In this document: one piece after another, positions 19,051 through 60,700 of the stretch
Numbering within the stretch: the first letter of the stretch is position 1
Layout of the letters: each line of letters opens with the position of its first letter
DNA from: Lytechinus pictus
Lineage: Eukaryota
Reading direction: 5' to 3'
Assembly (NCBI RefSeq): GCF_037042905.1
Contig: NC_087252.1
Location: 17,608,001 to 17,672,000 of the forward strand
Length of the DNA stretch: 64,000 nt
Notes under the pieces: generated by a model
The model's database searches: none
Told to the model about the DNA's origin: nothing
Seen by the model: only the letters and a program-made list of their open reading frames with translations
Translations under genes and position numbers: made by a program

Positions 19051-20925
19051 ATGGCGACACTTGAGCATTCTGTTTTGCAAAGTTTAAAGTGTCCGGTTTG
19101 TTTTGGTTTGCTGAACGATCCAAAACAACTGTCATGCACACACACATTTTGTCCAAAATGTATTCAAGGTATTCTAGCATGCTCTGTACAGAGGAATATA
19201 TTATCATGTCCAATATGTAAAAACACAACAAATGTCGCAGATGGCGATGTTGCGAATCTTAAAACTAACATACCTGTTAAGTCAATTGTTGATGACGTCA
19301 GGAATAGTAAACAGCTATGTGACGTGTGTGACAAGCGAGCAAGTGCCGCACACTTCTGTTGCGAGTGTGCTAAGAACATGTGTAATGAATGTCTGCAAGC
19401 TCATAACACATGGAAACCTAATCTTAAACATAAAGTAGTGATGGTTGAAGACATCAGAAAGGGTAGGGTAGTCTTAAAGAGGAAGGTTTACTGTCAAGAA
19501 GAAGTACATAAATCTGAAGAGTACGAGTGCTCTGACATATGCACGACATGTAAGAAACTCATTTGTATGAGATGTCGCATGCTCTGCCACGAGAAAAAAG
19601 GCCATGATGTGGAAGATATAAGACAGTACAATTCGTCTTTCAAGAAAAGCTCTGAGTTACTACAGGGTACAGGAAAGAAAAAAGCTACAAGAGTCAAGAA
19701 TCATATGACCTGTATTGATAATCAAATCAAACGTGTCCACAATCACATTCATGCGGAAAATGCAAAGCTTGACATGCTTTGTGAAGAAGCTATCAAGAAA
19801 ATACAAGAGAGGAATGCTACTTTGAAAAAACAACTAGACGATCAGAGAGAAGAATTATGCAAGAGTTTAAATGATATGAAAATTGCTGATGAGAGGTTGG
19901 TTAAGAGTATTGAGAGTGCCAGTGATTTGGTGAGTACTAGTTTGGAGGCCCCACTAGAAGGGGATGTTGTAGCAATACGTGATTCATTGTATGGAGAATT
20001 GAAAAAATTATTACTTAGGGAAAATCCAAAGAAGAAGGTTGCTACTGATGTAGGTGATCATGCAGAGGAACTGACGTTTACACCGAGCTGCGATCCTCAT
20101 ACATTGTCAATGTGGGAACTACGGTTTGTGAAATGTAAGCCGAAATGCAATGTACTACTCTCAGAGAGAGGACATATGAATGGCATAGCTGCTACCAATA
20201 ATGGTATGATGGCAGTTGGTTATAGTACAAGAGGGATTGATATATTCTCTCCTCATTGTCAGCTTCAGGAGGCAGTGATCAAAGACGTATGGATCGTGGA
20301 GGTAGGATTCCTCTCTGATGGCCGTTATTGTGTACGTGATGCACATAATAAGATATCACTGTACACATCAGATGAAGAGAAGCAGGATGTGACATTCGAT
20401 ACTATAGGCTACAGTAAAGGTGGGTCTGGTGGTCTCACTGTAGACAGCAATGATCTGATCTATGTTAGCTACAGGAAAGCTAAGAAGATCCAGGTATTCT
20501 CACCATCAGGTGGGAAGGCTATGAGGGTGATACCCTGCGATGGGTATGAACCAAAGCAAATCACAAGTTATGGTGATTCATTGATCGTTAAGCAGGATGA
20601 CACTCAGATAGCACGTATTAATAAAAAGCGGGGTGTTATAATGTATCAATTATTACGTAAACCTCTGGAAATACGCCTCTTTGCCGCTGTGAGTAAGGAC
20701 AATACAATCCTGATTTCCTCTGTAAGATTCGAGGAAGGTCTGCTCAATATCGATGAGTATACCGGTGAGCTCAAACACATTAGGAGTCTTATATCTGATT
20801 ACAAGATTGAAAAACCTGATAGGCATTGGTATTACCTTCAACAGTTTCAATCAGGAGAGATAGCTTTCTGTACACATAATAGGCTCTATGTATTCAACCT
20901 AGTTACTAGTAAAGTTACCTCGTAA
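19051..20925 (+). CDS. TRIM E3 ligase: RING, B-box1, B-box2, coiled coil, NHL-like beta-propeller (copy 1)
   Basis: 624-aa ORF. C3HC4 RING CPVC..CTHTFCPKC..CPIC; B-boxes CDVC..CCEC..C..C..H and C..H..CTTC..C..C..H; repeats such as GLTVDSNDLIYVS..KKIQVFSPSG. Confidence 0.93.
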   Translation: MATLEHSVLQSLKCPVCFGLLNDPKQLSCTHTFCPKCIQGILACSVQRNILSCPICKNTTNVADGDVANLKTNIPVKSIVDDVRNSKQLCDVCDKRASAAHFCCECAKNMCNECLQAHNTWKPNLKHKVVMVEDIRKGRVVLKRKVYCQEEVHKSEEYECSDICTTCKKLICMRCRMLCHEKKGHDVEDIRQYNSSFKKSSELLQGTGKKKATRVKNHMTCIDNQIKRVHNHIHAENAKLDMLCEEAIKKIQERNATLKKQLDDQREELCKSLNDMKIADERLVKSIESASDLVSTSLEAPLEGDVVAIRDSLYGELKKLLLRENPKKKVATDVGDHAEELTFTPSCDPHTLSMWELRFVKCKPKCNVLLSERGHMNGIAATNNGMMAVGYSTRGIDIFSPHCQLQEAVIKDVWIVEVGFLSDGRYCVRDAHNKISLYTSDEEKQDVTFDTIGYSKGGSGGLTVDSNDLIYVSYRKAKKIQVFSPSGGKAMRVIPCDGYEPKQITSYGDSLIVKQDDTQIARINKKRGVIMYQLLRKPLEIRLFAAVSKDNTILISSVRFEEGLLNIDEYTGELKHIRSLISDYKIEKPDRHWYYLQQFQSGEIAFCTHNRLYVFNLVTSKVTS

Positions 20926-21153
20926 GAATATTATTTTTTGACCTTCCAGAGCCAATCAATTTCCTACTTTACAAATTCTTAAATTCACCAGTTTCAATGC
21001 TAATCTTGGTATTTATGTTTCATTAATGTCAAAACAATAGAATAGTAAAAGGCAAAAGTACATAATATACAATTGTTATTACATACAGAGGAGAGTAATT
21101 GAAATATGAGACTCTACAAAGGATGAAAAAGAATTAAACTTCAGTTGAAGAAG

Positions 21154-21571
21154 AATCAAGGTACTGTTAGATTATTCGTGTTTCTGATTTCGAAAAGGAA
21201 AAGGGAAACAAGGAGGCGCGCTCAATTTTCTGTTTCGTGAAGGTGAAGCAGAAAAAGGGAAAAATTGATTTCAATTCAATGTTATGTTTCGTGAACGCGA
21301 AACAAAAAGAGGAAACGAAACTTTCAATTCAATTTTGTGTTTTCAAAAGGAAAAAATAAAAATTATAATATGTAAAGAAAAAGTCAAACGGAAGAATGAA
21401 CCGTTTTTCTGTTTTCTTGTTTTTACATCTTTCATTCTTGAATCAAAATATTAAAAAATTACCGTTTTCTGTTTTAAATATCGAAAATAGAATCAATTTT
21501 AAAGAACTATTTCGTTTTTGCTTTTTCCGTTTCGAAATCAGAAAAACAAATTATCTAACGGTACCTTGATT
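21154..21571. mobile_element. MITE downstream of TRIM copy 1
   Basis: TIR aatcaaggtactgttagat..tttctgatttcgaaa / tttcgaaatcagaaa..atctaacggtaccttgatt; absent from the paralog at about 60990. Confidence 0.85.
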
Positions 21572-24243
21572 AAAAGCTCTGTCCAAAGCTGCACCCCAAC
21601 TCTATCTTGTTTAACATAGTTTCATGCGGCATGTCAGGTTAGGTGTTACGTAATTTCCACTTCTATCATTACCATTCTTAAAGTAACACAGTTTGAGGGC
21701 TTTCCTTGAAACTCCATTTTTAGTAGAAATTAATGTAACAAAATGATGTTGCCTTTTTTCTTTCCATCAAAATATCATTTTACATACCCTTATTTAGAAA
21801 AAAAATATGTTAAAGCATAAATACAATTTCATGTGAATGACACCACGCAAAATTGAAAAGTGGAACAAAGCAGATTACATTGATTATTCAGAAATGATTA
21901 AAACCTCTATTTCCATAGTTTACTTTCTTGATGAAGAATATTATATGACATAAACGACTGATGTTGACAACGTGACCAGTAATGGTTCTGGTCCCATATA
22001 GTGGGCCTACGGAAAAAACCTTTGTTGAGAATGGTAATTAATAAATACAAGTCCTAATAGTTATATGTAATTGTAGGTGTATGTGTGAGGAAAAATTTAA
22101 GACTTACAAACAAATCAAAAGCAATGATTAATCGCAATAACAGTTTAATCTAATGATAAACAATCGATCGACCAATATCAGATCAATACGGCCAAAAATT
22201 CGGATGTTGGAAAATCCTGGCGAAAGTTTGCCTCTTACCTGGCTTAACATAGACCCAATATTGACAGAAGTAAGTCGATAGACATGATGCATGTGACGTG
22301 ATAACGGTGGATTCCAAGCTGGAGAGTAACATATATATTTTTATTCATTCTTTATCATTATGATTTGGTTCGTATGACAATACTGATGAGATTATTATAA
22401 ATTTTAATATAAGAAATGCATGCATATGATGCAGATTTACATCAACCGAATAGAAAGATGGTGTATATTACTTTTGTTGGTGTTATATACTCTACTTGGA
22501 TGCTATGGTATGTTCACGATTTCGATGCATTTATCAGTTTGTTCATGATAATTTCCATTACATATCCCTTTTTTGTTTTCGATATTATTAGTAACATAAA
22601 TATAAATTAATGAGCGATGACAACAAACATACATGTCGAATTCGATGTCAATACAAATGGAAATCATAAGAACCACAATTCAATTTATAGCATCGCAAAT
22701 TGGGAATAACCTTCATCAAAATGTAAAACCGAAATGTACAGTCATTTTGTTCACAGCTAACAAAAGAAAGGAGAAATATAGGCCTATAAATGTATATACA
22801 TATTTCGTTTATTTTGTCATAACGTTTATTACACTTATGAATTGTATTTAGTTGTAAATTCGTTTTATTTCAGATTGCTCAATCGAAGGGGAAAATGTTC
22901 ATCGTAATAAAATTATACTGAGTTTTTTTTTCTTAAAGTGCATTGTTTTATATTTGATCACATGTAACGCATTAAGTGTGTTCATATTGTAAAAAAGCTG
23001 AACAAAAGTTATACATACCACTAAACCCTTTCTATTTCCGCAGTCATTTCACCAAACAAATAAAAAACAAAACATTTTTTTGTTTGCATTGTATATTATT
23101 TGGTCTCATTCTTTCATTCAATCATAAAACTAGTTATTCGAGTTCATTAAGACCAATCAAACGTTTCAAACAGACTTTTAGATGGAAAATTGAAATTGAA
23201 GTGCCCTTCCATCTTTGTGTTCAAACACATGCGAAAGTCCCATTTTATACATTATTTATTTATATATACATGTATATTACAAGTGGTGTCCATTTCGTGC
23301 AGTTTTGTATAAAATTTTAACCAACTGCTGTATTTGTTTTGTCATTTTATATAGCATTTATAAAAAGTAAGTATTATTATTAACAGGAGACCGACGAAAG
23401 AAAAGCTTGTTAAAATGCTACCATTGAAATTAGACAATTTTAAAAGCAGTTGATTTCAATACAAACTATTAAAAAAGGGAAATAATTGTGAGAGCTAACG
23501 TAGAACAAACATGGAAATGGTAAAAATAAATGGATTGAAAGGAGATGCCTGGTCATAAAAAATATTATAGATAATAAAACATGTATCAGGAAGGTAATGG
23601 GGCTTCCAAAGCAATGAATAAAAGAAACGAAAATGAAAAGAAAGAACGAAGGACAAAAGTGGGATGAAATAAAGGGGGAAAGAAAATAAGTTATAAGATT
23701 GTTGCCAAAAGTGCTCAGTATGGCCTTTATAGAGATCTTTCTTGGCTGTACAAATACAGATTTTGAAGAAAAAAATTAGGAATATTTCACGAGTTATTCC
23801 TTAATAGTCATCTTATCATGCTATCACAATACTTTGTTTCTAGTTTAGTTACTATTATTCTTTCTTGTCGTGCAATCATTTAAACTCTTATCCAAACATA
23901 TTGACATTTCATTTTTAAGAGTGATTATTATTTATCCTAAATTTAAAGAGTGATATTGGAGGTCATTGTCACCTCATTTTATCCTGAATTAGTTTCATAA
24001 CAAGTCTTTATCTATTATCTTAATCTTTTCATGCATAATCATGATCGTGGTTGCGTCAGTATCAAGTTGATTTGACATACCAATTTCCTTACTTACGCTC
24101 AATATTTACAGCCTGAGCCTTTAGTACGGCTATTTTTATGTATTATTTTGCTTTTTAACCTAGGCGTTGCGTTATAACTGAATGCATACCACTTAAAGAT
24201 GTACTTTTTGTCTTTGTTCTCTTTTCCCCTGAATCCAACAAGC

Positions 24244-24407
24244 NNNNNNNNNNNNNNNNNNNNNNNNNNNNNNNNNNNNNNNNNNNNNNNNNNNNNNNNN
24301 NNNNNNNNNNNNNNNNNNNNNNNNNNNNNNNNNNNNNNNNNNNNNNNNNNNNNNNNNNNNNNNNNNNNNNNNNNNNNNNNNNNNNNNNNNNNNNNNNNNN
24401 NNNNNNN
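24244..24407. other. N-run (gap or mask)
   Basis: Run of n; the paralog is a TA microsatellite. Confidence 1.
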
Positions 24408-25039: not shown

Positions 25040-25167
25040 NNNNNNNNNNNNNNNNNNNNNNNNNNNNNNNNNNNNNNNNNNNNNNNNNNNNNNNNNNNNN
25101 NNNNNNNNNNNNNNNNNNNNNNNNNNNNNNNNNNNNNNNNNNNNNNNNNNNNNNNNNNNNNNNNNNN
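25040..25167. other. N-run (gap or mask)
   Basis: Run of n. Confidence 1.
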
Positions 25168-25717: not shown

Positions 25718-27213
25718 TGTCAGAAGCTTATTCAAACTCCCCTTTACTAGCCAGTGGAACGGCCTACTTGGTTGAGTAACTCCTTAATTTGTTTATGAAT
25801 AGACCAAACCTGACTGCTAGAGTAGGCAACCCCTCACTGTGTTTGATAGCTATTGTGTGTGTGCACTGCATAGGGCAATGCAAGCAAATGCTCAGCAGAC
25901 TGCAGATAAGCAAGCATAGGGTGCAGCAGCACCTTTCAGCAGCTCATTGGCTGGGAAAGCCAGCACTTTGGTGCCACGCCTTTGATATTTGGAGTGGCAT
26001 GTAAGCCAGCAGTGGTTGGTTCACTGGTTGGAATTCAAGGTCCAGACTGTAAGTTGACGTTTTATTTTACCATATAATTATGGAAGGCTTTGATAACATT
26101 TAGAAACTGTTATGTTAATTTGTATTACAATTGAACATGACGAAGGATAATTATGCTTTTTAAAGACTAAGATATAAGACATCGGATATTATATTTATGT
26201 CATACACTTTATGATACATTTTATGCCTTACACACGTCATGAAATGATTGTTTTAGGAAGTGACTTAACTGTCCAATATTTTTAACTTGAAAGCTATTTT
26301 GTCATTTATCAAGACAATTAGTCTATTTACTACAAATGTTAAACACTTGTCAACTAAGGAGAGTGGAAATTTTTATATGACGCTTTGTTGGGATTAATGT
26401 TTCACTTGTTCAGAGTTAGGACACTGCTATTAGGTACTCGGAAGCAAGTATAGAAAGTTCAGTGACCTGCTTGAATGTACTCTGCCTTTACTTTATTATA
26501 AGCCATTTGAATAACAGAAATGATATGGACTGTAGGCTGTTAATCCTTGCGTATTCTCTTCCAGACGGCCGTTTTTCTCCATGGTTTATCCACGTCTTTT
26601 GACGTTCCGTGTCTCCATGTATCGCCAAAGTTCTCCTCGTTTAGCTACGTCCTACGTCTTGTGACGTTCACGGCCTATTCGACGTCTTACGACGTTCTAC
26701 GATTGCTACGTTATCCACGGGAAAGTCCCGAGATCTAGGTTATCCGGTTTCTTCTAGTTTGGCAAGTTCATCGCATTCGCGAGTTCATCCTCATATCGTC
26801 TTCCGTTCGGCACTGCTCATCCATTTGCGTCTGACACCGGGTGATGAGTGAAGACTTGAGAAACTGAACTTTCCCCATAATATAAAGTCGGTATATGTAT
26901 AGTATATACATTGTTTTCATAAACACACACAGAGTTTATGCTCTTTCCTTTGAATAGGAATAGCAGGTCACAATACTTAGTTTATTTACATTATACTAAT
27001 TTGAATTGAGACAGATTGTTCCAAAACTTATTGATACTGGTTTATTGAACTTTATGTTTTGACAGCTTGTGAGCCTCGATAATGGCAATATTGATATATA
27101 TAATAAATTCATTTTGATTGAAAGGTACAATTTTATCTTATAGTTTAATTCTTGGGTGGTCAAACAACCTGTTTAGACTAATAAGTCAAGTTCACATCAA
27201 ACACAATGTGACA
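25718..27213 (+). repeat. LTR1
   Basis: TGTCA...TGACA termini; AATAAA near 27102. Confidence 0.95.
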
Positions 27214-27216
27214 ATT

Positions 27217-27232
27217 TGGGGGCTTGTCCGAG
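27217..27232 (+). promoter_or_regulatory. Primer-binding site, tRNA-Pro type (also 33641-33656)
   Basis: TGGGGGCTTGTCCGAG vs canonical Pro PBS TGGGGGCTCGTCCGGG, 3 nt after the LTR. Confidence 0.85.
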
Positions 27233-27701
27233 TTGTTTAGGCCATAACATACCCTGTTGGTTGAATTAATTGGTATAGGATTTGATTGTTAGATTTGTAT
27301 AATGTACTGATGAAGATAATCTAGGATTTTCTGTTTGTTTTATTGGTCAACAGACATAAGATTTAATTGGTCGATGACATGACCTCTCGCAAAATTTGTG
27401 ATATGTACTTATGAAAAATTTTCTGTTCAATTTTCAGAATTTAGCCGAAATCCTTCAAGTTCTTTGTGTCAGTGGGCCAAGGACCATCCAGTGCACCAAC
27501 ACTCCTGCTAGCGACGAGCATGCGCAGCAAGGTCAAGTGCGAGTAAAGGTTTATTTTGGATTGTCGGTGAGTTGCAAAATTGAATATGTATGAAAATTGT
27601 GCCACACAAGTTATCAAACACCCCTATAAGAAATAGTTGATATAGTATATAGTTACTCAATAGTTTTTTGACTTAGGTAGTGGTAGTTTAAACCTTTAAA
27701 C

Positions 27702-30700
27702 ATGAGTACTAAGTGGTTTGAGATTGGCAAGGAATTAGGTCTGTCAGGGCCTGAGCTTCTTTCATTTGTAGGAGAAAGGGAACAATTAGAGCGAGAGGAA
27801 CGTAGGGCTAATAGAGAAGTTAGGAAAGAGGAAGAAAAAATTATGGAGATGAAACTTGAATTGGCTCGTGTTCAAAGCCAGAGTAGGTCTGATAGTATGA
27901 TTGATAATGGTTATGGAAACGGTCGTAGTTTGGTACCAACCCCGAAACTCCCTCATTTTGTTGAAGGAAAAGATAATATGGACGCATATCTCAAAAGGTT
28001 TGAGAAGTATGCGGAAGTTCAGTCATGGCCAAGAAGTAGTTGGGCCATTAGTTTAAGTGCACTCTTGCAGGGTAAGGCACTCGATGTGTATTCAAGACTT
28101 CCAGCAGATAAAGCTGAAGATTATGATGCCCTCAAGGAAGCATTGTTGTTAAGGTTTGAACTTACTTGTGACGATTTTCGTCAAAAGTTCAGGTATTCCA
28201 ATCCACAGTCTGGGGAGACCCCCACTCAATTTGTTGTTAGGTTAGAACATTATTTGAGTCGTTGGATTGATCTGTCAGGTACGCAACGTACATTCGATGG
28301 TGTAGTAGAAATGTTGCTCAAGCAACAACTGGTTGAGAGAGGTGGAACCTCTCTAGGTCTTTTTCTGAAGGAAAGGAAACCTAAGAATATTTCAGAGATG
28401 ACTAGTCTAGCAGACACGTATGTAGAGGCCCATAGTGGTCACTTTGGAATTACCAGGAAAAATAAGAACGATAACAAGGGAAAGCCACAAGGTAGTAGGT
28501 ACCCTCAGTCAGACAGTGAAGCTAAAACAAGTCCGGGGAACTTAAGAAATTCACTTCCTGAACGGAAAAGAATTGGTCCGTGTTTCATCTGTAACAAGAT
28601 GGGGCATTTAGCAGCTAAATGTAACACTAAATTACAAGGTGCAAGTCTAATTTGTAGTACTAATCATTCAAAAAGTAGTAGCCAAAATCAGAAAAGAGAA
28701 TCAACTCAGTATGAAACAAATAGTAAAGTGTCAGTTGATAGTAGGTCAGATTCTTGTGCAACTTGTTCGCTTCTTAGTCCAGATATGGAAGGAGGTGAGA
28801 CACTTGGACTTTTGTTAATGTCTTTAGTTAGTGAGAAAGATAAGTCAGAGATAGTTAATAGAGATACCTTACAAAAATCACCGATGATGTGTGCTGCATG
28901 TCAGCGTCGTTGGCGTGGTAAGTTGACTGTTGTTGAAGGTAGGATTGGATCACACAAGGTTGATGTTCTTTATGATTCAGGATGTTCCGGTGTTGCGGTT
29001 AAGAAAAGTCTTGTGAGGTCAGATCAATTTACTGGTAAATATAGACAATGTGTTTTGATAGATCAGACTCTGCGTAGGTTTCCTACTGCTAATGTTCATA
29101 TTAGCTCACCTTTGTTTGTAGGTACAATAGAAGCACTGTGTATAGAGACACCAGTTTTTGATGTTATAATAGGAGACATTGAAGGTGTCCGTTCCGTGAG
29201 TAATCCCCATCCAGATTGGAAAATGGTAGTTCAGGGTGACGATATTACTCAAGGTCATGTAAGGAATGTAGATTCCAATGGTAACTCTAATTCTGAGGAT
29301 GAGATAGTTGAAGTTCATGATGATGATATTACTCAAGGTCATGTTAGGAATGTAGATTCCAATGGTAACTCTAATTCTGAGGATGAGATAGTTGAAGTTA
29401 ATTGTGATGATGGTACTAATGTAGGCCTAGCTGTGCAGACAAGGTCTCAGAGTCGAGAAGCTCGACGCCCCCAGCGGCCCTTGAAAGTTCCATCTCAAAT
29501 CCCAGATGTTTCTCCTGAAGAAATTAGAAGAGAAACTGCAAAGGATCCTAGTTTGAAGAGAGTGAGAGAACTCGCTCAAGTTAGTTTGTCAGATGATGAT
29601 AGGAAGAACACTTATTTCGTAGTAGATGATGGACTGTTGTACAGAATGTTTCATCCTAAGAATGAGAGAGGTAATTCTGTGAAACAATTGGTAGTCCCTC
29701 AGGTCTTTAGGAAAGTTGTGTTGTCACTTGCTCATGAAGGAATAATGAGTGGGCATCAAGGCATAGGCAAAACCACTGAGAAGATTTTAACTTGTTTCTT
29801 CTGGCCCGGCATTCATGCCGATGTTACTCGTTTCTGTCGCTCTTGTGACATTTGTCAGCGGACAGTACCAAAGGGAAGAGTTCCCAAAGTGCCACTTGGC
29901 AAAATGCCCGTAATAGATATTCCATTTCTCAGAGTGGCTATTGATATAGTAGGCCCTATCCATCCAATGACTACAAAGAAGAACAGGTATATCCTGACCA
30001 TTGTTGATTATGCGTCTCGCTATCCAGAGGCAGTCGCATTGCCAAATATCGAAACAACCACTGTAGCTGAGGCTATGGTTGAAGTGTTTTGTAGGGTAGG
30101 AGTTCCTCAGGAAATCCTTACCGATCGTGGTAGTCAGTTCACGTCTGACATGATGAAGGAGGTGAGTAGGTTGTTGTCAATAAAACAATTGACCACAACA
30201 CCCTACCACCCCTCTTGTAATGGTTTGGTTGAGCGTTTCAACCAGACCCTAAAGCAAATCTTGAAAAGAGTTTGTGCGGATCGACCCAATGATTGGGACA
30301 GGTACATAGGACCAGTGTTGTTTGCATATAGATCAGCCCCTCAGGCATCCCTTAGGTATTCCCCTTTCGAATTGATCTATGGTAGGCAGGTTAGAGGTCC
30401 CCTAGAAATACTAGAAGGACTTATGGAGTGATGAAACTCATGATCCCGAGTTGAAGACTACTTATCAATATGTAGTCGATCTTAAAGAGAGATTGAAGAG
30501 TACTCTAGAAGCTGCTCATGATGAGCTTCGTAAGGCAACGTCTAGAAGTGAAAGGCACTACAATGTTAGGAGTAGGCAGCGTAAATTTGACCCTGGAGAT
30601 AAGGTACTTAGCCTCCTCCCCACTGATCATAATAAGTTGCTCCTCCAGTGGAAAGGTCCATTTAAGGTTGTACACAAACTTGGCGATAATGATTATCGTC

Positions 30701-32127: not shown

Positions 32128-32141
32128 AAATAGGGGGTAAT
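32128..32141 (+). promoter_or_regulatory. Polypurine tract (also 38550-38563)
   Basis: aaatagggggtaat immediately before the LTR TGT. Confidence 0.75.
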
Positions 32142-48192: not shown

Positions 48193-48479
48193 CATAAAAA
48201 TGAATAATTCTACTTTTCAAGTGCTTTCAATACATAAAATGGAGGTTACAAATAAAATTCATAGGTTTGTAAGCTTTAAAAAAAAAAAATTGTACAGAAG
48301 GACATGAACGGATTTTGAATATTGGGACCAGTGAAACTTATGCACTGTTAACCTAAGTTGGGGGATAGAAAAGGGTCTGTAAACAAAAACCCAACATGAA
48401 ATGTATTGTGGTGTCAGATTATTAATGGACAAGTAAACAAAGCAATTTTTTCTATAATTCTGTTTTTGACCAGTAGCAA

Positions 48480-48740
48480 GTGAATCTCTTTGAACAAAGG
48501 AAACACATGATCATACTTTCTGGCCGTTGAAATGGTACCGACTGCTCGATTCTGAATGTGCTGTAGTGACTATTATCTAGGCAGCTGAACATCAGTTCAA
48601 AGTGTCCCCAAGTGATTATAAATACGAAGTAAAAAGTAAAGGTCCCAGTACAAAACCCTGAGGAACGCCATATTGCAACCCATGACCCTTTTTTCTTAAT
48701 GGCTACCGACCGCGATTCGTTTTAAAGGCAAGGTCAGTTT
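48480..48740 (-). pseudogene. L2/CR1-like RT fragment
   Basis: Minus strand LQYGVPQGFVLGPLLF. Confidence 0.55.
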
Positions 48741-49639
48741 GTCAAAGGTAGTTCAGATTTTGATTTCTTGACTCTAAAACCCCCAAATAAATATTTTGAA
48801 CAACTCTCTATCAAAATGGAATCACCTACTAAAGTTGTCATTTTTCAAAATGACAGGCAGCTGTCAGTTTGAATTTTTCATGGCAGTAATCTCTGATTAG
48901 GCGGTCAAGTTTAGGTCAGTTAACTGTGTGGACTTAAGATTTTAATTTCCTAACCTCAAAAATCCCCATGTTGCTATTTTAAAAAGCTCATTTATACCAC
49001 TAATCAACCCAAATTCCTTTCTTTTTCAAACTGGCCACCAGCAGCCACTCTGGATATTTTAATTATACTAAAGTCAATCTCTGTTCAGGAGGTCAAGATC
49101 ACTTCAACTCATCAAATAGACTTAAGATTTTGATTTCCTTTACCCCTATAAAACTCATTCTTTATAATATTTTTATCAGCTTTATAACGAAATCCACCCA
49201 AAATTTCTTTTTAAAATGGTTTCCGGCAGCCATTTCAAAGTTTTTATACGAATTTTATGGTCAGTTTTTCTTCATACAATTAATTGTCCAGAAACACATT
49301 ATACATGAATGTGATTGGCAAATTTATTTTATCCCATTAACCAATAGCTTTAAGATATAGACATCTGTGACCCTTAAATTGGCAGCCACCTTGGAGTTTG
49401 AATTTGGGGGTAATTCAATTCAGCAAATAGATGTCACATGTCAATCTCTTGAAAACTTTACCCCTAAATCAATATTTCTGTCAGATTACTAGGCCAAATG
49501 GCCCTAAATATTATCAAAATGGTCTCTAGCTGAATTCTCCCTAATTTCACAAACCCTTAGAAAAATTGGCATACTGGCTATTTTTTTATAAAATTTATTA
49601 GAGCACAAATGGTCAAAAACAGATCTTTACACTCCACAT

Positions 49640-51500
49640 TCCTCACTTGAACCTAGGAAGTGATTCGCTAGGTCCACAGGAGAGCTTGTGCGTCACAGAC
49701 TGTAGATGGTTGGACCATAGGGTGACCCTTTGATTGTGAGCAGAGCCATCAAGGGAATCAGTCGAGTGAAGGAAGCTACATCTTGTTTTGAATCTCTTTT
49801 TGGCAGGTTCATAGTTAAAGAGTGGATGAAGAGGGTGATCTTCTTGCTTGTTTTTGTCCACCTTTGCTGACACCTATCTTCTGATGTGTGGATGGACAAT
49901 ACCACACAGTAGGTAGAGATCATCTGCTCTTGTTTTGTCGCAGCCAGTAATTGCTCTGCAAGCAGCATTCAGGTCTGCATCAATCTTTGCAGCATGTGAT
50001 GATCTAAAACGGATGGGGAATGCATACTCCGCAGTCTAGTAGCATAGAGCAAGAGCTGTTGCACGGATGGTTATGGCATCTGTTCCCCGTTTTTTATGTT
50101 GGCAAGCTTCTTCAGGATGCTGTTCCTTGCTCCAACTTTAGCCTTTGTCTTGGAAACATGGTCTTTGTAGGTAAGGGAACTGTCTAGGGTGGCGTCAAGG
50201 TAGATTGGCTTACTGGTGTGTTCCAACCATTTTCTATACCATCTGAACCTCAGTTACTGGTCTGCATCTCTGTTCTTTAGGTGAAAAGCACTGAGTTGGG
50301 TTTTTTCTGGATTTGCTCAGAGATGATTTGCAGCGTAGTAAGAAGTCAGGCCTACCAGAGCATTGCTGAGTGCTTTTTCATCTCTTCAAAGGACTGTTTC
50401 TGTGAAGCAATGCAAATGTCATCAGCGTACAGGTAGCTCTCATTATTTGGTGGATTGGTTGGTCATTTGTGTAGATGCTAAAGAGTGGGACGATGATGCT
50501 TTCTTGTGGGAGACCTTTGTGTGTCAGCCATCTGCTACGGGAACCACTGAGATTCACAAAAACTGCTGATTTGAGAGCATGCTCTGAATCATCTGTGTCA
50601 GCTTAAGCCTTCCTTTGTCATCTCAAAGACTTTCCTTGTGAGTATTCGATGATTGTGTCATAAGCTGCAATGAGGTCAACAAAGGCTGCTCCGGTTATCA
50701 ACCCTTTCTCGAAGCCACCATCTTCAATGTACTGTGCCAGATTCAGCAGTTGACTAGTACAGGACTTTCCTGGCCTAAATCCTGCCTGTTCTGGAATGAG
50801 GAGCTCATCCACCAAGGGAGCAATGTGGTTGAGTAGGAGCTTTTCAAAGATCTTGTATGCGTGACAAAGCAGAGATACTGTATGGGCAGGTAGCTCTTTG
50901 CGTTGGCTGTTTTTTTGCCTGGCTTGAGTAAGGCAACTACCCTTGATTTCCTCCGTAAGTTTGGCATTGTGCTTTCACTCAGACAGTAGTTTAGCATGTC
51001 AAGCAGCCGTTGGAGTGCAACAGGTCCAAGATGTTTCATCTGCTCACAGATCGAGGACATCATCCAATCCAACTGCCTTGCTGATCTTCATTGCATTGAT
51101 AGCATTGCACAAGTCGTTCATGCTGAAAGGTCTTGTGAACTCAGATGACTCTTGGCAGGCTGTCCGCACACTTTTAGGTTGGATCTTCGCTGGTGATTAT
51201 GAGGGTTACCTTGGCTGTTCACTAGAAGCTGGTTGGCCACTTGGCCGGCGGTAACTTGGGACCTAGATTGGGACTTTGTAGAGTCATTCCCAAGGATCCG
51301 AATCTGGTGTTCCTGCCGGCCCTGGGTATAGCTTGTACGGCATTCTTGTGGAATATTCTTCCTTCATGATTTCTTCAGCAGCTCTAAAAATGTGTCGTAA
51401 TGAGTAGGGAGTGCAGGGAGGTTCTGAAGATATGTATCCAGATCTATGGCAAACTGCTCACAGTTTACTTTCTTCAGGTTGAAAGTCTGCAGAAGGGAAC
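49640..51500 (-). mobile_element. Degenerate Vingi/Ingi-like non-LTR retrotransposon
   Basis: RKSRVVALLKPGK, LIPEQAGFRPGKSCTSQLLNL, TGAAFVDLIAAYDT, and C-terminal HPLHPLF..KRFKTRCSFL; frameshifted. Confidence 0.75.
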
Positions 51501-52493
51501 TTTGCGAGATTAGTTCGTTTTTACTGTACATTCCACCATTACCTTTTTCAACATGTTATTTTTTACCAAATAAGTTGGTATTTGGTTGCCATGGCAATGG
51601 TCTGAGATGGTACTTACATATTTACCAACAAGCATATTTTTTTTAGCAACCTAAACTTAGCGGAAATGAGCGAAAAAAATGTGACTCTATATGTTTTTAT
51701 CAAAATTTGTTCTTTTCTGAGAAAAATAAGATGTTACCATGGCAACGGGCCATTTGCAACATTGATATTTATCTTTAAATTCAAGCATTCTCAAGGCAAC
51801 ATCAATTCCTATCATTCCAATAAACTCATGCATAACACTTACTGTAGTTTTTACCACTAAATGAGTGGTAAAAACCCAACGCATGTAGATTAGGTCGCTT
51901 TTATTGTATTTCTCGACATTGTCTTTTTTTACCATGTTATTTCTTTTTTTACCAAACTAGGTATTATTTGATTGCCATGGCAATGGAATGAGAGTGTATT
52001 TATACATTTAGCAAAAGCCACTCCTATGTTCAACACCATAAACGCAGAGAAATTAAACAAAACATAGATTCTACAACTTTAAATCAAAATTTTTACTTTT
52101 CTGGAGGAAAAATGAGCCGTTAACATGGCAACGGGCAAATTGGAACCATTTTGATGATCTTAAATATTTTGAATTGCATTTGTATTTAATTGGAATCTTG
52201 AAATCAATCTATTGGCTAATTTATATCATGTTTATCTACCATTTACAGGGGAATACATGCTATTTTTGATAAATTAATCCGTTGCCATGGCAACGGTCGA
52301 AGACGGCATTTATAAATTTGGCAACAAGCAGATTCGTATTCAGCACCCTAAAAATAGGGGGATAAGCACAAAAAATCAGATTCTACAGAAATTTTTTGGA
52401 ATTCTTACTACTTGCCGCCTACTATATGTATCATTCATCGTGAATATACATGTATCAAGATACTAAATATTTCAAAGTAAATTGTACTGCTTC

Positions 52494-52624
52494 NNNNNNN
52501 NNNNNNNNNNNNNNNNNNNNNNNNNNNNNNNNNNNNNNNNNNNNNNNNNNNNNNNNNNNNNNNNNNNNNNNNNNNNNNNNNNNNNNNNNNNNNNNNNNNN
52601 NNNNNNNNNNNNNNNNNNNNNNNN
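52494..52624. other. N-run (gap or mask)
   Basis: Run of n; the paralog is (TAC)n. Confidence 1.
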
Positions 52625-54889
52625 TACTAAAACACCCGCTACTACTTATACTATTAATAGTATTAATACTACTTCAGCAACAAAAATACATTAACATCAA
52701 ATAACATTACCACTGCTTCTACTACTAATATTACTATTACTACAAACCCTTCATCCAAAGGCCCTCCAGGTTTTTTTCCGAAAGGGTGCATTGGGAGCGC
52801 CTGTTTGCCTCTTGTTGACTGGAACCCTATCTTTAGTTGGTCTAATTCCTATTCTGTCTAATCATCAAATAGTCTAAAATAAAACAAACTTTGTCTTATA
52901 CAAATACGAGGCACAAATCATTAATTTTGGTCCATTGTCGTCTTTTATTAATTTCTTTTTACCACAGTTTGTAGTCTAGTTGGTCATATATTAAACCGAA
53001 CGATGTTAGACCATTTTGCCAACTGGCTGTAGGCCAAGTGGAATTATAAGCCGATTCAGACTAATGACTCTTTGATTCGGCTGAAAACTCGGTGAAAAGG
53101 GGTTCCAACGCTTCCGTCTAGGCAAAGCCCGGGGGCAGACAGAGGGTTGGATTAGGATAGAGTAAGGGGCATAATTCCCCTAAATTGATTTACAAGTTAT
53201 CATTCAAATAGAAGACAACACACAACCCTTAACTTTTCGAAATGTGGTATACCATTTTGTTTAATGGAGTACCACAAGGTTCTTTTTTCGGTCCATTTTT
53301 TCTGATTTATATCAACGGCATGTACTTTGTGCTAAACACATTAAATTACATATTGTTTGCGGATGACACAAGTGTTTGTCTATCCCATCGTGATATTGAT
53401 ATCCTAGCAAAGACTCCTAGACTTTCAAAACTATCTAGTGGGTTTCGAGGTAATATGCTATCACTGAATGGAAACATATTATGAAATACATTTTAATTAT
53501 AGGACGGCTAATGGTAAGTGTGATTTAAGATTAAAACTTGACAATACTTTTTTTTATAAGGTGTCTACTAGGATCATAGGAATGTCTGTTAAAATCAACT
53601 TTAATGGAACGATCACTTGAAACACATCAGTAAATCATTTTCTCGAAATATAAACTACACTATATTGAATACATTGAACCTGACAAAATTATATGCATTT
53701 TGCACAATAGTCTTATTCTACCTGTTGTGTCATGTTTCTTTGGACAATATCAAGGAAAGTCACATATGAAGTTCTTCTGTTGTAAACAAAGCAATTCATA
53801 TTTTTTGCTAGTTGGTTTGGTTACCCTGACCATATTGAACTGCAAAGTCTTGCTGTTGATGATATCCATTTCCTTCAAACTTCCCTTTTAATCTATCGAT
53901 TTAGTGCCGGAATGTTACCTGCCCGCTTTTCCACTAGATTTTCTGTTGCCTTTACATGCCTAGATTATAAGCTAAGAAAACTTTCATTTTTGTTACTACC
54001 AATTGCAGAACATCTCTCAGCAATGTAAACTGCATTCTAGGCATTTCCTTTCCAGTGATGAAGCATAGACAAATTAAGACCTGGCTTATCCACATCCTCC
54101 AGGAGCGACCAAATACATTCCAACGTGTCACTACCGGTATGATTACTTTTAATCAAATCCAGTATTTGCTAAGTGCTTCATTTTATTGCTATCGTTGAAA
54201 TTTTGCCTACTATTTGAAAGTTCAGGTTATTTTGTGAGAATTATTTTGTTTATGTTTTAGGTGGTCTATCTACTGAATGTGAATGTTATATATGTTTGCT
54301 CTAATAACTTAGGTTTTCCATGATTAATATTTTACATGAGCAATATCTAAATCACATTTTGTTGGTTCACATTTGGATAGAATGTGAATTCTATACATAT
54401 ATTTCCAGATATTTGGGCGATCCCAAATGGAGGGATATCAAAAGTAGCAAATAATATGTGAACAGTTGCATCACAAAAATGTATTTAATCGCTTAAATTG
54501 TAGTCAAAGTAACTATGGCTGATGATTTGTTTAATCAGTATTGAACAAAGAAATTGACGTTTTAATGTTATCATTTTATCAGCGAAAGAACTCAAGAATT
54601 AACTGTGTCCACATCCTATAGATCTCCTCCTCATCCACATCGCATGGTTCTTGGCGGAGTGATCACTGACATTCTACCTGTATCTTTTCACTACCGATAT
54701 GATAACTTCTTTAAAAATATTGTATATTTCAAGTTCTATATTCTTTTGCTATTCATTTAACACTGTCTCTCATTTCATACATCATCTCTCTCTTTTTTTT
54801 TACTTGATTTAATTGGTGAACTGTTGTTTAATCTTATCATTCATTTATTTTTTATTCTCAAAATCTGTCACAACGCTATCGACCATAAA

Positions 54890-57799
54890 GTCTTTTGTCA
54901 ATGCATGTTTTGAATAATAAAAAGGTTTTTATAATAGGAGATTTTAATTTGAACTTGTTAGATCGTAATACCCCCTGTAATCAAGAATATAAATATGATG
55001 TTATCCAACTTTTTCATTCCATTAGAAACAAAACCCACACGGATTACAGATACGTCGTCAACCTTAATTGATAATATTTTTGTTAACGATTTTTCCCATA
55101 TTTTATCTGGCAACTTGGTATCGGATATATCCGACCATATCCCAATATTTGTTGAAATTGTATTTGATAGAGTCTCTAAAGATAACAATATTAAACATAC
55201 ATTTCGTGACTTATCGGATGACAATATTATTAGACTTCGAGAGAGACTGGTATTGGTTGACTGGACTGAAATATACAATATTAACGACGTTAATGTTTGT
55301 TTTGACAAGTTAATGGACATATTTAATATGTCGATTTATCAAGAAACTATACCGCTAAGAAAATTTTCCCGATCTAATTATAAAAAAATACCCAGACTTC
55401 CGTGGGTTTCTAAATCGCTCCTGAAGTCAATAAATCGTAAAAACAATTTACATTGTAAATACAAAAAGAATCCTGAAACGAAAATATGTTCGTTATCGGA
55501 ACGTTCTTACATCCCTGTTACGTTTAGCTAAAAAAGCAGTATTTTGCTAATCAATTTAATAAGTATAAAAATGATGCATCGAGTACATGAAAGGTGATAA
55601 ATAATGTTTTACAAACAAAGAAATCGAAGGAGTTCACTAAAGAAATCATAAATAATAATGTAACGGTTGTTAATCCTGCAGATATGGCTGACGTGTTTAA
55701 CAACTATTTTGTCGATATTGGTGCGACTCTTTGCCATAATATTCCTGAACCTGACAAAAGATTCCAATACTTTCTAAAAAAATCCCAACCCTAAAACCAT
55801 TTTCCTTACTCCGATCACTGAATTTGAAATTAAAAATATTGTAAATAATTTAAAACCTAAAAAAAGTCCTGGATGTGAGGAACTTACGAATTGTGTCATA
55901 AAACGAATCATTAATGAAATTGTAACTCCCTTGACTTTTATATTCAACCAATATTTGGTAAGTGGTCTGGTTCCTCAAAATATGAAAGTAGCCAAGGTTG
56001 TTCCAGTGTTTACAAAAGGCGATAGACGGATTGTCAGCAACTTTCGTCCAATTTCACTCCTTACTTCCCTGTCTAAAATTCTTGAAAGATTAATCTATTC
56101 TCGTTTGATAAATTTTCTTATCTGATAATCATATTTTATGCGACTCTCAATTCGGTTTTAGAAAAAAAAAACATTCCACTGTACACGCCTTACTTTCTTT
56201 TATTCAAAAAGTGGCAAATGCTATTGATAATTCTCTGCACACAGTTAGTGTATTCCTGGACCTTTCCAAGGCCTTTGGCACGATTAATCATGATATTTTG
56301 CTTTACAAGTTATCACATTATGGTGTGCGTGGAAAGGCCTTGGAATGGTTAACGAGTTACCTAACTAACAGAAAACAATTTGTTTCAATAGAAGACCATA
56401 AATCTCAAATGAAAACTATTTCTTGCGGTGTACCGCAAGGATCACTCCTAGGCCCACTGCTTGTCTTGTTGTATATTAATGATTTTAATAATTCATCAAA
56501 TGACCTATCATTTATTCTTTTCGCGGATGACTCGAACCTTTTTTGTCACACCGTAACCCTAATTTACTACTTACCATTTTGTATAGGGAATTGCGGTATG
56601 TTCAGACATGGATTCACGCAAATAAGTTGTCACTCAATGTAAACAAATTTTATGCTTTTCAGTAATTCTTTGAATTCTTTGCCGGACCATGTAATTATAA
56701 ACAATGTTAATTTGCAACAAGTTAATTCCACCAAATATCTAAGTCTTTACATTGATCATGAATTATCATGGAAATGTCAAATTGATTATATATGTAAGTT
56801 ATCTTCTCGTAACACTGGCATTTTGAATAAACTGAAATATTTTTTTCCTGATCACATTTTAAAAACATTATATTCTACACTTGTTTTATCCCATATGAAT
56901 TATGGAATATTGGCCTGGGGTAATTGCAATACAACCTTAATTGATAAAATATTCACGATACAAAAACGAGCAATTAGGATGGTTAATCGAGTTGGGTTTT
57001 TATTCCCATAGAAACCCATTATTTTTCCAAAATAAAGTACTCAAAATTTCTGATATATATGCATTTCAAGTTGGTATATTTATGTTTCAGCTTTCAAGAG
57101 GTTAATTGCCTGATACATTTGTTTCTATGTTTCAAAGGACCAATCGAATACACACATATCCCACCCGGCTAAGTGACTCCTATCACCTTCCGCGCACTTG
57201 CACTCTCCTTGCTCAACGAACAATTGCATTTGAAGGGCCCAGGTTTTGGAACGATCTTCCCGATGATATGGTACATAGTGCCTCACTTAATATATTCAAA
57301 CGTAAATTGAAAGCGATGGTTTTCAATTCTTATAATTTCCCTTTGTAAACTGTTATATTCATGTACTTTGTTAATACGCTCTGGCCGAGCATGGACCGTA
57401 ATAGGTCCATGGGCCGAGTAATGAGCAATAAATAATAGTCATAGAGTGGCGGACTCTTTTTATTCATTTTTTATTATTTTTTTTTTGTATTCCTTAATCA
57501 ATCGTCACATTTTGGCATTACTTTGTTATAATCAATTTACTTACCTGTCCTCTCCTTCTCATTAAGACCGATTTTTTTTTTTCTGGATCCTGCAGACTTA
57601 ACAAGCCTTGCTTTTTTATGCAGATTCCCTCATATTTCACTCTTTTAAATTGTCTTTAATTCCAAATCGCTATTTTCTTTAATTTGAATTAATTGTTATG
57701 CCTTGTCTGATTTGTATTCTCATAAGTTTTCTGATATTGTTTCAAAATTTTTGTTTGTACTTGTGAAATATGTAAAATAAAGTCAAATCAAATCAAAAA
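54890..57799 (+). mobile_element. 5'-truncated CR1/L2-group LINE (APE-RT, frameshifted)
   Basis: IIGDFNLNLL, PTRIT..LIDNIF, SDHIPIF, FLDLSKAF, GVPQGSLLGP, FADDSNL; 3' AATAAA plus (TCAAA)n; possible ATAAA TSD; empty site near 17055. Confidence 0.9.
57390..57411. mobile_element. 22-bp palindromic insert with 7-bp TSD (P-element-like footprint)
   Basis: GGCCGAG-CATGGACC-GTAATA-GGTCCATG-GGCCGAG. Confidence 0.6.
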
Positions 57800-57835
57800 A
57801 TAAAAATCTACTTTGATTTCCATTACATCTATAAA

Positions 57836-57910
57836 GACTGCCATGAACATGTCGCGACAAACTTTCCAAGGTCATCAGATCATAATGACGTCATCCAGTC
57901 GCCATTTGTA
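57836..57910 (+). promoter_or_regulatory. Candidate TRIM upstream regulatory module (copy 2)
   Basis: Same motifs as 17091-17165. Confidence 0.35.
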
Positions 57911-58828
57911 TTTTTATTCATGAGATTGATAATTAAAAAAATCATCAAATGTGGGTTCGATTTTTTTTTTCATTTTCTAAAAAGAGTTAAACGCAGATTT
58001 TAGGTTATATGAAGGTAAGACAGCTGATGATGTAACACATTTGTTATTGGTCTTTCGTTATATGGACTATACAATATTCCAGATTTTGGAAACCTTGCAA
58101 TAACGAAACTCTACATTGAATCAAAATTTGTTAGAAAAATTGCATGTAATCGAGGAGGGATGAAACATTGTTTTTCATGTAATAAAATACAAAGTAAATA
58201 GATGATGGGTGACGTCAAGTTAGGACCATCAATTTTGCTTGTCAGTAAAGATACGTGTCAATTACCTATGTATGTGAAGTTAAGCAAAAAGTAAAAATGA
58301 TGAGATATTCGTATTTCCCTTTCAGTTTTGATGAAATTTCAGCGTTATGGTTATTACATATATCCTTATAGACCTTTTTGCTCGAGAATAGCTTTTGTAA
58401 GACTAATGTTGCCGAATGTTTGGTGGATGGGTTGTCTATACTGTCTCAAAGCGCCACACAGAAATAAGTTTGCTAGTCAATATTATAATATTCTGTTTGC
58501 AATTATCTCATATCCCAATACCTTTTCAATATTCAAGTCAAATCATTTTTTTTTCTTCTTCTTCCTTTTATCTCAGAGTAAATTGTGACAGATGGCGTCA
58601 AGGGAGAGAGCAGGATAAATCTCTTAGGGCATCTGGGATCCTTTTTGCTATGATTCGGAGCTATTATCGTTGGTGTAGGACATTTGTGGCGTATTCATAG
58701 TGTGTGTTTTTTTTTAAGTATTATTCATTACACTGTTGACCTGCAAACTGGAGTTGAAAATATCAAAATCCTACAGATTTTGTAAATAATTGTAGGTTTC
58801 TCTTACGTACATTATAGTAGCACTAAAT

Positions 58829-60700
58829 ATGGCGACACTTGAGCATACTCTTTTGCAAAGTTTAAAGTGTCCGGTTTGTTTTGGTTTGCTGAATGAACCA
58901 AAACAACTGTCATGTACACACACATTTTGTCAAAAATGTATTCAAGGTATTCTAGCATGCTCTGTACAGAGGAATACTTTATCATGTCCAATATGTAGAA
59001 ACAGAACAAATGTTGCAGATGGCGATGTTGCGAATCTTAAAATTAATACACATGTTAAGTCACTTGTTGATGACTTCAGGAATAGTAAGCAGCTCTGTGA
59101 CGTGTGTGACAACCGAGCAAGTGCCGCACACTTCTGTTGCGAGTGTGCTAAGAACATGTGTAATGAATGTCTGCAAGCTCATAACACATGGAAACCTAAT
59201 CTTAAACATAAAGTAGTGATGGTTGAAGACATCAGAAAGGGTAGGGTAGTCTTAAAGAGGAAGGTTTACTGTCAAGAAGAAGTACATAAATCTGAAGAGT
59301 ACGAGTGCTCTGACGTATGCACGACATGTAAGAAACTCATTTGTATGAGATGTCGCATGCTCTGCCACGAGAAAAAAGGCCATGATGTGGAAGATATAAG
59401 ACAGTACAATTCGTCTTTCAAGAAAAGCTCTGAGTTACTACAGGGTACAGGAAAGAAAAAAGCTACAAGAGTCAAGAATCATATGACCTGTATTGATAAT
59501 CAAATCAAACGTGTCCACAATCACATTCATGCGGAAAATGCAAAGCTTGACATGCTTTGTGAAGAAGCTATCAAGAAAATACAAGAGAGGAATGCTACTT
59601 TGAAAAAACAACTAGACGATCAGAGAGAAGAATTATGCAAGAGTTTAAATGATATGAAAATTGCTGATGAGAGGTTGGTTAAGAGTATTGAGAGTGCCAG
59701 TGATTTGGTGAGTACTAGTGTGGAGGCCCCACTAGAAGGGGATGTTGTAGCAATACGTGATTCATTGTATGGAGAATTGAAAAAAATATTACTTAGGGAA
59801 AATCCAAAGAAGAAGGTTGCTACTGATGTAGGTGATCATGCAGAGGAACTGACGTTTACACCGAGCTGCGATCCTGATACATTATCAATGGGGGAATTGA
59901 GGTTTGTGAATTGCAAGCCTGCGAAATGCAATGTATTACTCTCAAAGAAAGATAGTATGAATGGCATGACGGCTTCAAAGAATGGTATGATGGCTGTTGG
60001 TTATAGCACTGGAGGGATAGATATATTCTCTGCTGATGGTCAGCTGCAGAAAACAGTCATCAAATATGTCGAAACAAGTGAGGTAGGATTCCTCTCTGAT
60101 GGTCGTTATGTTGTACTTGATACATGCAATAAGATATCACTGTACACATCAGATGAAGAGAAGCAGGATGTAACATTCGATACTCTAGATGTTAGTGAAG
60201 GTTGGTCTGGTGGTCTCACTGTAGACAGCAATGATCTGATCTATGTTAGCTACAGGAAAGCTAAGAAGATCCAGGTATTCTCACCATCAGGTGGGAACGC
60301 TATCAGGGAGATTCCGTGCGATGGGTATAAACCTGCACAAATCACAAGCTATGGTGATTCATTGATCGTTAAGCAGTATGACAACCAGATAGCACGTATT
60401 GATAAGGAAGGTAATATAATGCATAAATTATGGAAACCTGTGGGAAATTGCATTATTGCTGATGTGAGTAAAGACAACACAATCCTAATCGCCTCTGTAA
60501 AATACGAGGACGGCCTGCTCAATATTGATGAGTACACAAGTGGGCTGAAACACATCAAGACTCTTATATCTGATTATAAGATTGAGAAACCGGAGAGGCA
60601 ATGGTATTACCTTAGACAGTTTCAATCAGGAGAGATAGCTTTCTGTACACCTAATAGGCTCTATGTATTCAACCGAGAAACTAGTGAAGTTACCTCGTAA
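58829..60700 (+). CDS. TRIM E3 ligase: RING, B-box1, B-box2, coiled coil, NHL-like beta-propeller (copy 2)
   Basis: 623-aa ORF, paralog of 19051-20925 with intact zinc ligands. Confidence 0.93.
   Translation: MATLEHTLLQSLKCPVCFGLLNEPKQLSCTHTFCQKCIQGILACSVQRNTLSCPICRNRTNVADGDVANLKINTHVKSLVDDFRNSKQLCDVCDNRASAAHFCCECAKNMCNECLQAHNTWKPNLKHKVVMVEDIRKGRVVLKRKVYCQEEVHKSEEYECSDVCTTCKKLICMRCRMLCHEKKGHDVEDIRQYNSSFKKSSELLQGTGKKKATRVKNHMTCIDNQIKRVHNHIHAENAKLDMLCEEAIKKIQERNATLKKQLDDQREELCKSLNDMKIADERLVKSIESASDLVSTSVEAPLEGDVVAIRDSLYGELKKILLRENPKKKVATDVGDHAEELTFTPSCDPDTLSMGELRFVNCKPAKCNVLLSKKDSMNGMTASKNGMMAVGYSTGGIDIFSADGQLQKTVIKYVETSEVGFLSDGRYVVLDTCNKISLYTSDEEKQDVTFDTLDVSEGWSGGLTVDSNDLIYVSYRKAKKIQVFSPSGGNAIREIPCDGYKPAQITSYGDSLIVKQYDNQIARIDKEGNIMHKLWKPVGNCIIADVSKDNTILIASVKYEDGLLNIDEYTSGLKHIKTLISDYKIEKPERQWYYLRQFQSGEIAFCTPNRLYVFNRETSEVTS

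Follow-up and report, generated by a model that had tools for sequence, protein, structure and literature searches.

Probable three-donor origin of a propeller-type TRIM gene in a recombining sea urchin array

Main

TRIM-NHL proteins are textbook conserved, single-copy regulators. The TRIM5/TRIM22 cluster and the finTRIM and btr genes are clustered, lineage-specific TRIM expansions with exchange between neighbouring copies, in which a conserved RBCC scaffold (RING, B-box, coiled coil) is joined to a C-terminal recognition domain with positively selected loops. The teleost finTRIM and btr (bloodthirsty-related TRIM) families are covered in PMC3137616, and the sea urchin Sp185/333 (SpTransformer) genes, with segmental duplications and unstable, repeat-rich clusters, in PMC5103432 and PMC8634487. 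Here we describe a stretch of 64,000 nt from the sea urchin Lytechinus pictus (the window; CM073233.1:17,608,001-17,672,000 of GCA_037042905.1) with two TRIM genes, T1 and T2, whose C-terminal domain is predicted to be a six-bladed propeller of NHL type. We consider it likely that T1 and T2 are units of an array with repeated non-allelic recombination, that T1 is a three-donor chimera and that a few codons in the top loops of the propeller are positively selected.

Two genes within a head-to-tail array

Both genes are intact and intronless and lie on the same strand.

19051-20925, + strand: T1, a TRIM gene of 624 amino acids, recognized from its open reading frame (ORF), Pfam matches, Cys/His pattern, AlphaFold 2 (AF2) model and Foldseek matches
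T1 domains, in residues: RING 13-57; B-box1 90-127; B-box2 148-185; coiled coil 190-339; six-bladed NHL-type propeller 356-621
58829-60700, + strand: T2, a paralog of 623 amino acids with the architecture of T1

The two proteins are 86.6% identical, and 124 columns of the codon alignment differ. The T2 reading frame is used by a public gene model (P0012, 706 amino acids) from residue 39 on, with another N-terminus. The window lies inside a head-to-tail array that extends over ~480 kb of chromosome CM073233.1 and numbers at least 12 TRIM genes, all of them intronless and built on the plan of a RING, two B-boxes, a coiled coil and an NHL-type propeller with six blades. We compared T1 and T2 with nine further copies at 17.454-17.934 Mb of this chromosome, all in the same orientation, and added one L. 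variegatus gene (L009, or Lv009) as an ortholog yardstick for the copy L001. L001 lies 270 kb downstream of T1, with L002 175 kb and L004c 120 kb upstream of it, and L006 lies 265 kb downstream of T2. Sequence searches place these genes in a large family restricted to sea urchins, with identities of 73-88% in Lytechinus, 50-63% in Strongylocentrotus and 35-38% in Diadema; the same search reached canonical TRIM-NHL proteins only at E values of 1e-5 to 1e-9. A targeted literature search, within a limited library, found no paper describing the family.

A near-identical tract shared by T1 and T2

The RING region (residues 1-95) of T1 and T2 contains 13 amino acid and 6 synonymous differences, and the part after residue 349 contains 65 substitutions and 3 one-codon indels (68 in total) together with ~34 synonymous codons. 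The block between them, residues 96-349, carries exactly 3 nucleotide differences and no synonymous one: I163V, L298V and L320I, at 19537, 19942 and 20008 in T1 and at 59315, 59720 and 59786 in T2.

19336-20097, + strand: T1 copy of the 762-nt near-identical tract, which takes in B-box1 for the most part, B-box2, the entire coiled coil and the start of the linker
59114-59875, + strand: T2 copy of the same tract

The final 5′ mismatch falls at 19335 in T1 and 59113 in T2, and the first 3′ mismatch at 20098 and 59876. The longest run of agreement between the genes spans 150 consecutive sites that are polymorphic in the family, a length reached in 0 of 2,000 permutations. Nei-Gojobori synonymous divergence (dS) between T1 and T2 drops from 0.124 in the RING to 0 in the middle (146 synonymous sites) and rises to 0.375 in the propeller; family-wide, dS of the middle region is 0.286, and T2 is separated there from its next relative by 0.21. 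An earlier note, which had estimated by eye about 3 differences in the middle (all changing an amino acid), about 13 of 95 residues in the RING region and about 68 in the propeller including indels, was accurate in all of these counts and in its coordinates, and its view of the middle as gene-converted agrees with the synonymous divergences, which mark a recent conversion or recombination tract.

Purifying selection alone could in principle keep such a block identical, and the scaffold does evolve under constraint, with a ratio of non-synonymous to synonymous rates (dN/dS, or ω) of 0.31-0.39. The synonymous sites refute this as the cause, however, with none of 146 differing against the family-wide and next-relative values above, and we regard the explanation as exceedingly improbable.

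All three tract differences are private. That all three are non-synonymous was considered as a signal and rejected (P = 0.53). Codon 320 (20008 in T1, 59786 in T2) is found in three states, T in T1 (Leu), A in T2 (Ile) and G in all ten other sequences, which implies that this position of coiled-coil helix 2 has been hit twice, independently, after the exchange.

Donors of the T1 and T2 segments

Several lines of evidence support a mosaic origin of T1 and, in part, of T2. First, in sliding-window identity each segment of T1 has a different best partner, and the flanks switch donor in step with the adjacent coding segment.

15347-19346, + strand: T1 5′ flank and RING, of L001 type; the flank is 98.3-99.2% identical over ~3.7 kb, and coding nucleotides 1-296 have 1 mismatch
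20443-24243, + strand: T1 propeller blades 3-6 and 3′ flank, of L002/L004c type; the flank is 85-97% identical
60701-61430, + strand: T2 3′ flank, which matches its L006 counterpart at 95.9% identity

Coding nucleotides 286-1047 of T1 match T2, nucleotides 1393-1760 have 1 mismatch to L002 and nucleotides 1517-1825 have 0 to L004c; downstream, the T1 3′ flank is closest to L004c, L002 and L004a (85-97%). The T2 RING is closest to L006 (95-99%), and parts of the T2 propeller are closest to L004b and L005 (94-98%).

Second, the trees of four segments conflict with one another at support values of 96-100%. The RING tree joins T1 to L001 (99/96) and T2 to L006 (99/98); the middle tree joins T1 to T2 (100/100), sister to L006; and T1 groups with L002 and L004c in both the first (98/99) and the second half of the propeller (96/98).

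Third, dS changes in steps along the gene. Between T1 and L001 it rises from 0.016 in the RING to 0.363 in the middle, and between T1 and L002 it is 0 over residues 465-586 and 0.467 over residues 1-349. The ortholog yardstick, L001 against Lv009, gives 0.077 for L. pictus and L. variegatus. The propellers of T1 and T2, at five times this value, are therefore far older than the species split and must have been imported; the RINGs are somewhat older than the split, and the middle tract and the two other donor tracts of T1 (dS 0-0.016) are much younger.

Fourth, at 116 of the 145 T1-T2 substitutions outside the tract, both states occur in other paralogs, so that most of the differences are old imported variants and not new mutations; the T1 loop before blade 5, for example, is identical to the L002 loop. 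The propeller had been called strongly diversified in the earlier note, a description that does not survive these shared states, the 99-100% identity of the last 430 nt of T1 to L002/L004c or a domain-wide dN/dS of 0.34.

Finally, run-length permutation finds agreement runs with p<0.0005 in 14 paralog pairs, and the near-identical tracts among 11 array members fall about as often in the RING as in the scaffold and the propeller, the longest being that of T1 and T2. Over-long identical tracts, discordant segment trees and stepwise dS, the marks of mosaics formed by gene conversion between paralogs or non-allelic homologous recombination, are all found here.

In the mechanism that we propose, non-allelic copies would recombine repeatedly, by gene conversion or unequal crossing-over, and each event would paste 0.2 to over 4 kb between repeat units, coding sequence and flanks alike. 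T1 would then consist of an L001-type 5′ flank and RING, a T2-type middle and an L002/L004c-type propeller end and 3′ flank, with the T1-T2 middle as the longest and youngest tract in the sample (0.4% divergence). Because the T2 RING and middle both group with L006, T2 is weakly favoured as the donor of the middle.

Flanks and the possibility of a recent duplication

The middle might instead be what is left of a recent segmental duplication of T1 and T2, both ends of T1, and in part those of T2, having later been overwritten by distant paralogs, with no conversion of the middle itself. The flanks bear on this alternative.

13016-17727, + strand: upstream part of the T1 unit; the T2 unit is colinear with it at 43923-45734, 52625-54889 and 57802-58464 (80-98% identity)

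Near the genes, T1 and T2 are 79% identical in 340 bp and 670 bp upstream and 88% in 107 bp downstream; farther upstream, identity is 92% at 16115-17059 and 95-98% at 13436-16122, and in part A of the repeat unit it is 78-86%. The flank of the T1 unit is itself a patchwork of segments common to other units. The suggestion that the flanks are more diverged than the middle block holds close to the gene (79-88%) but misses this unevenness, with 92-98% identity farther away.

The 95-98% identity of the distal upstream flanks is what a duplication would leave behind, and the outer segments of T1 switch donor together with several kilobases of flank, as in the products of crossover. The distal flank is equally similar to L001, however, and so is not specific to T1 and T2. 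Moreover, no flank segment (2-20% divergence) is as young as the middle (0.4% divergence, dS 0): at a neutral divergence of 3%, ~4.4 synonymous changes would be expected in the middle, and 0 are seen. We hold a duplication remnant to be unlikely, and prefer an exchange of the middle between existing copies.

Assembly

An artefact of assembly, in which paralogs were collapsed or mis-polished or haplotype copies were misplaced in tandem across gaps, could also produce the near-identical block or the chimeric appearance of T1. T1 and T2 do lie on different contigs, with three runs of N between them (24244-24407, 25040-25167 and 52494-52624), sea urchin genomes are highly heterozygous, and no independent sequencing run contains more than 22% of the sequence words of the T2 region. 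The N runs fall outside both ORFs and all compared blocks, so the reading frames are not affected; they do separate the T1 and T2 contigs, which makes the order and the 39.8-kb spacing of the genes dependent on scaffolding.

Against this, the tract carries three private differences, and the flanks of T1 share 93-98% identity, short of 100%, with those of its donors, as for separate loci. Like mosaics recur between many other pairs, and P0002, an L. pictus protein present only in the nr database and without an exact match in the compared loci, has the same type of middle. Haplotype copies were considered separately and judged unlikely, with part A at 78-86% identity and a propeller dS of 0.375, which are too diverged for alleles. 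Taken together, the non-identical flanks, the private differences and the recurrence of the pattern make an artefact very unlikely, and non-allelic recombination within the array remains our preferred reading.

Protein architecture

The N-terminal domain of both proteins is a C3HC4 RING, with Pfam matches to zf-RING_UBOX and zf-C3HC4 over the cut-offs in T1 and T2; in an alignment of 52 relatives, C14, C17, C29, H31, C34, C37 and C53 never vary and C56 hardly does. The Pfam zf-B_box match at residues 86-131 scores 20.1-20.6, under the gathering score of 24.1, and two complete Cys/His sets (90-127 and 148-185), invariant in the 52 relatives, define two B-boxes. In the full-length AF2 model, the coiled coil is a 109-residue helix (190-298) followed by helices 306-321 and 328-339, at a predicted local distance difference test score (pLDDT) of about 80-90. 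The helix pattern is typical of TRIM coiled coils, and dimerization is predicted from it.

The C-terminal 285 residues are modelled with a pLDDT of 92.8 as 23 strands in six four-stranded blades. The solved structures closest to this model by Foldseek are NHL domains, those of Brat, Mei-P26, Thin and TRIM2/3/71, with template modelling (TM) scores of 0.64-0.77 at probability 1.0 and a sequence identity of 14-17%. Matches to Brat, Mei-P26, Thin and TRIM2/71 reach TM scores of 0.71-0.77, in line with the NHL propeller that the earlier note had assigned. The Pfam NHL repeat (PF01436) has no match in T1 and scores 16.5 bits in T2, under the cut-off of 20. Pfam gave no B30.2/SPRY match in T1 or T2, the C-terminal domain being a propeller instead, and no filamin domain is among their Pfam matches.

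Both L001 (L001:10001-11779) and the L. variegatus gene (L009:10001-11797) drop the family frame near residue 590, in the last blade, and end early, at 592 and 598 amino acids. The altered C-terminus may therefore be common to the two and older than the species split.

Probable localized selection on one face of the propeller

By the usual convention, the D-A and B-C loops form the top of a propeller. We read strands and loops off the DSSP string computed for the AF2 model, assigned faces by strand order and defined the D-A and B-C loops as the top face. The variable patches map to the loops that lead from strand D into strand A of the following blade, and to the first turn of strand A. Amino acid differences between T1 and T2 occupy 26 of 65 top-loop positions and 39 of 199 elsewhere (Fisher P = 0.0015), in agreement with the earlier observation that changes cluster before the blade starts, on one face.

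Pairwise Nei-Gojobori dN/dS is 0.49 in the top loops, 0.32 in the bottom loops, 0.39 in the strands, 0.39 in the RING and 0.34 in the scaffold, and the top loops have an elevated dS as well (0.43). With all classes below 1, pairwise counting was rejected as evidence of positive selection, and because it gave none we wrote a site model. This is our own implementation of M1a and M2a, in which each partition has a single IQ-TREE topology and relative branch lengths do not vary. M2a was favoured over M1a for residues 350-472 (likelihood-ratio test (LRT) statistic 18.4, p = 1e-4, with 5.8% of codons at ω 4.7) and for residues 473-624 (LRT 8.6, p = 0.013, with 2.8% of codons at ω 4.5), and the LRT was 0 for the RING and two scaffold partitions, which are equally recombinant.

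20290-20676, + strand: six codons with posterior >0.8 for ω>1, namely W414, H432, Y454, S459, L539 and R542

Five of the six lie in the predefined top loops, and the sixth where strand A of blade 5 makes its first turn; elsewhere, the protein evolves under purifying selection (ω 0.3-0.5). These models suggest modest, localized positive selection on the putative binding face of the propeller. The diversifying selection suspected earlier was thereby borne out for one class of codons, with ω about 4.6, confined to the propeller and its top loops, but not for the pairwise dN/dS, which is below 1.

The shared scaffold

The earlier note further proposed a shared dimerizing scaffold that allows heterodimers with two different propellers; in such a model, selection would keep the B-boxes and coiled coil identical through conversion. 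TRIM coiled coils are established dimer interfaces, and the edges of the tract fall near domain borders, at the start of B-box1 and in the linker before the propeller. The same middle (97.6-98.8% identical) is shared by T1, T2 and P0002, yet these carry three propellers and two RING types. P0002, for which the best match among the compared loci is T2 (89.2%), has a T2-like RING and a third propeller (93.8% to P0005) joined to the shared middle; this combination fits shuffling as well as design.

Across the family, the scaffold does not stand out. Pairwise comparison of 13 full-length L. pictus paralogs gives mean identities of 80.6% in the RING, 81.5% in the B-boxes and coiled coil and 77.0% in the propeller, and the shared type of middle is limited to T1, T2 and P0002. 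Tracts are as common in the RING and propeller, most of them ignoring domain borders, scaffold dS is the 0.286 given above, and random shuffling would also yield one tract common to three genes. The 'homogenised scaffold' thus fails as a property of the array, and selection for heterodimers by way of conversion is, in our estimate, improbable. Judged from sequence, the shared scaffold appears to be a by-product of shuffling, not a design feature.

With near-identical coiled coils, T1 and T2 should be indistinguishable from self and would form mixed dimers if co-expressed; the identical coiled coil would thus permit heterodimers, and we see no sign of selection for them. A bolder picture is of the array as a germline repertoire of intracellular E3-ligase receptors, with cassettes (RING, scaffold and propeller loop) shuffled by ongoing recombination and a coiled-coil-sharing subgroup (T1, T2 and P0002) forming mixed two-propeller dimers. 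We think this picture quite doubtful as a whole; if it were true, mixed dimers would provide more specificities than there are genes, and recognition would be through an NHL propeller instead of the SPRY domain of vertebrate TRIMs.

Other elements in the window

A 986-bp stretch at 17728-18713, 337 bp before the start of T1, is found only in T1 and L001, and is missing in T2, L004, L005 and L006 as well as in the L. variegatus locus. This is probably an insertion carried along with the L001-type 5′ segment.

Between T1 and T2, at 25718-40060, lies an element of long terminal repeat (LTR) type that contributes 14 kb to their spacing. It is arranged in tandem as LTR, internal part, LTR, internal part and LTR, with a period of 6424 bp, LTRs of about 1.5 kb, copies that are 99.7% identical and CCTC at both outer sides. 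The ORF of the second internal part (34126-37797, 1223 amino acids) has Gag-like SCAN, zinc-knuckle, integrase and SH3 matches and no reverse transcriptase match; the ORF of the first copy is broken by a stop at 30431.

Compared with the T1 unit, the T2 unit contains an insertion of ~6.6 kb at 45770-52399, with no internal ORF of at least 120 amino acids. It is bordered by ~830-bp inverted repeats (45770-46596 and 51576-52399, 91% identical), its right end adjoins the gap at 52494-52624, and its long terminal inverted repeats give it the look of a non-autonomous element. Another stretch of 2.9 kb in the T2 upstream flank (54890-57801), missing in the T1 unit, has short ORFs at 54995-55531 and 56211-56642 without Pfam matches. 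Part A of both units contains tandem repeats with a period of ~50 bp (1711-1925 and 40353-40838, 74-85% identical). Downstream of T2 are a 115-bp exact direct repeat (61429-61543 and 63886-64000, 2.46 kb apart), a ~480-bp tandem duplication (62019-62982, 80% identical) and several ORFs of 120-200 amino acids without family matches.

Discussion

Several points weigh against the interpretation of T1 and T2 as recombining, positively selected members of a recognition array. Pairwise dN/dS stays below 1 in every class, and even the best two single loops reach only about 1.1. The site model that does find selection is self-implemented with fixed branch lengths, and recombination within a partition can inflate such tests. 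Public read data gave only assembled fragments of 30-230 nt at the locus, none of which bridges a junction under a 31-nt rule, and a public RNA run, which may be from another species, gave 0 reads on the T2 region. Ligand binding, E3 activity and an immune role of T1 and T2 are putative, being predicted from the sequences.

On the evidence of their architecture, we infer that the proteins may act as E3 ligases that dimerize through the coiled coil and bind variable targets with the top face of the propeller, most plausibly in defence. If expressed and involved in defence, they would add a new class of diversified intracellular sensors to the expanded TLR, NLR and SRCR sets of sea urchins. The locus also offers a clean worked example of a three-donor chimera with dated tracts.

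How the family relates to known systems depends on the feature compared. By structure, the best matches to the T1/T2 propeller are TRIM-NHL proteins (Brat, Mei-P26, Thin/Abba, TRIM2, TRIM3, TRIM32, TRIM71/LIN-41 and NHL-2), whose known members are conserved, single-copy and mostly RNA-binding developmental regulators. By contrast, the urchin family comprises dozens of intronless copies, is restricted to sea urchins and varies on the top face, and it stands apart in its identity of only 14-17%, its sub-threshold Pfam NHL repeat and its lack of a filamin domain.

By organization, the urchin array resembles TRIM5 and the finTRIM genes, being clustered and having positive selection restricted to loops on the surface of the recognition domain (p = 1e-4 and 0.013). 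Unlike the urchin proteins, TRIM5 and the finTRIM proteins recognize their targets through a B30.2/SPRY domain, and an antiviral role has been demonstrated there and is putative here. The patchwork of segments with differing closest relatives is shared with the MHC, KIR and Sp185/333 (SpTransformer) genes, but those encode secreted or cell-surface proteins of other families, whereas T1 and T2 are presumably cytosolic E3 ligases. In the sea urchin array, the TRIM-NHL architecture is multiplied, clustered and variable on the predicted ligand face, with a shuffling of cassettes like that of vertebrate immune families.

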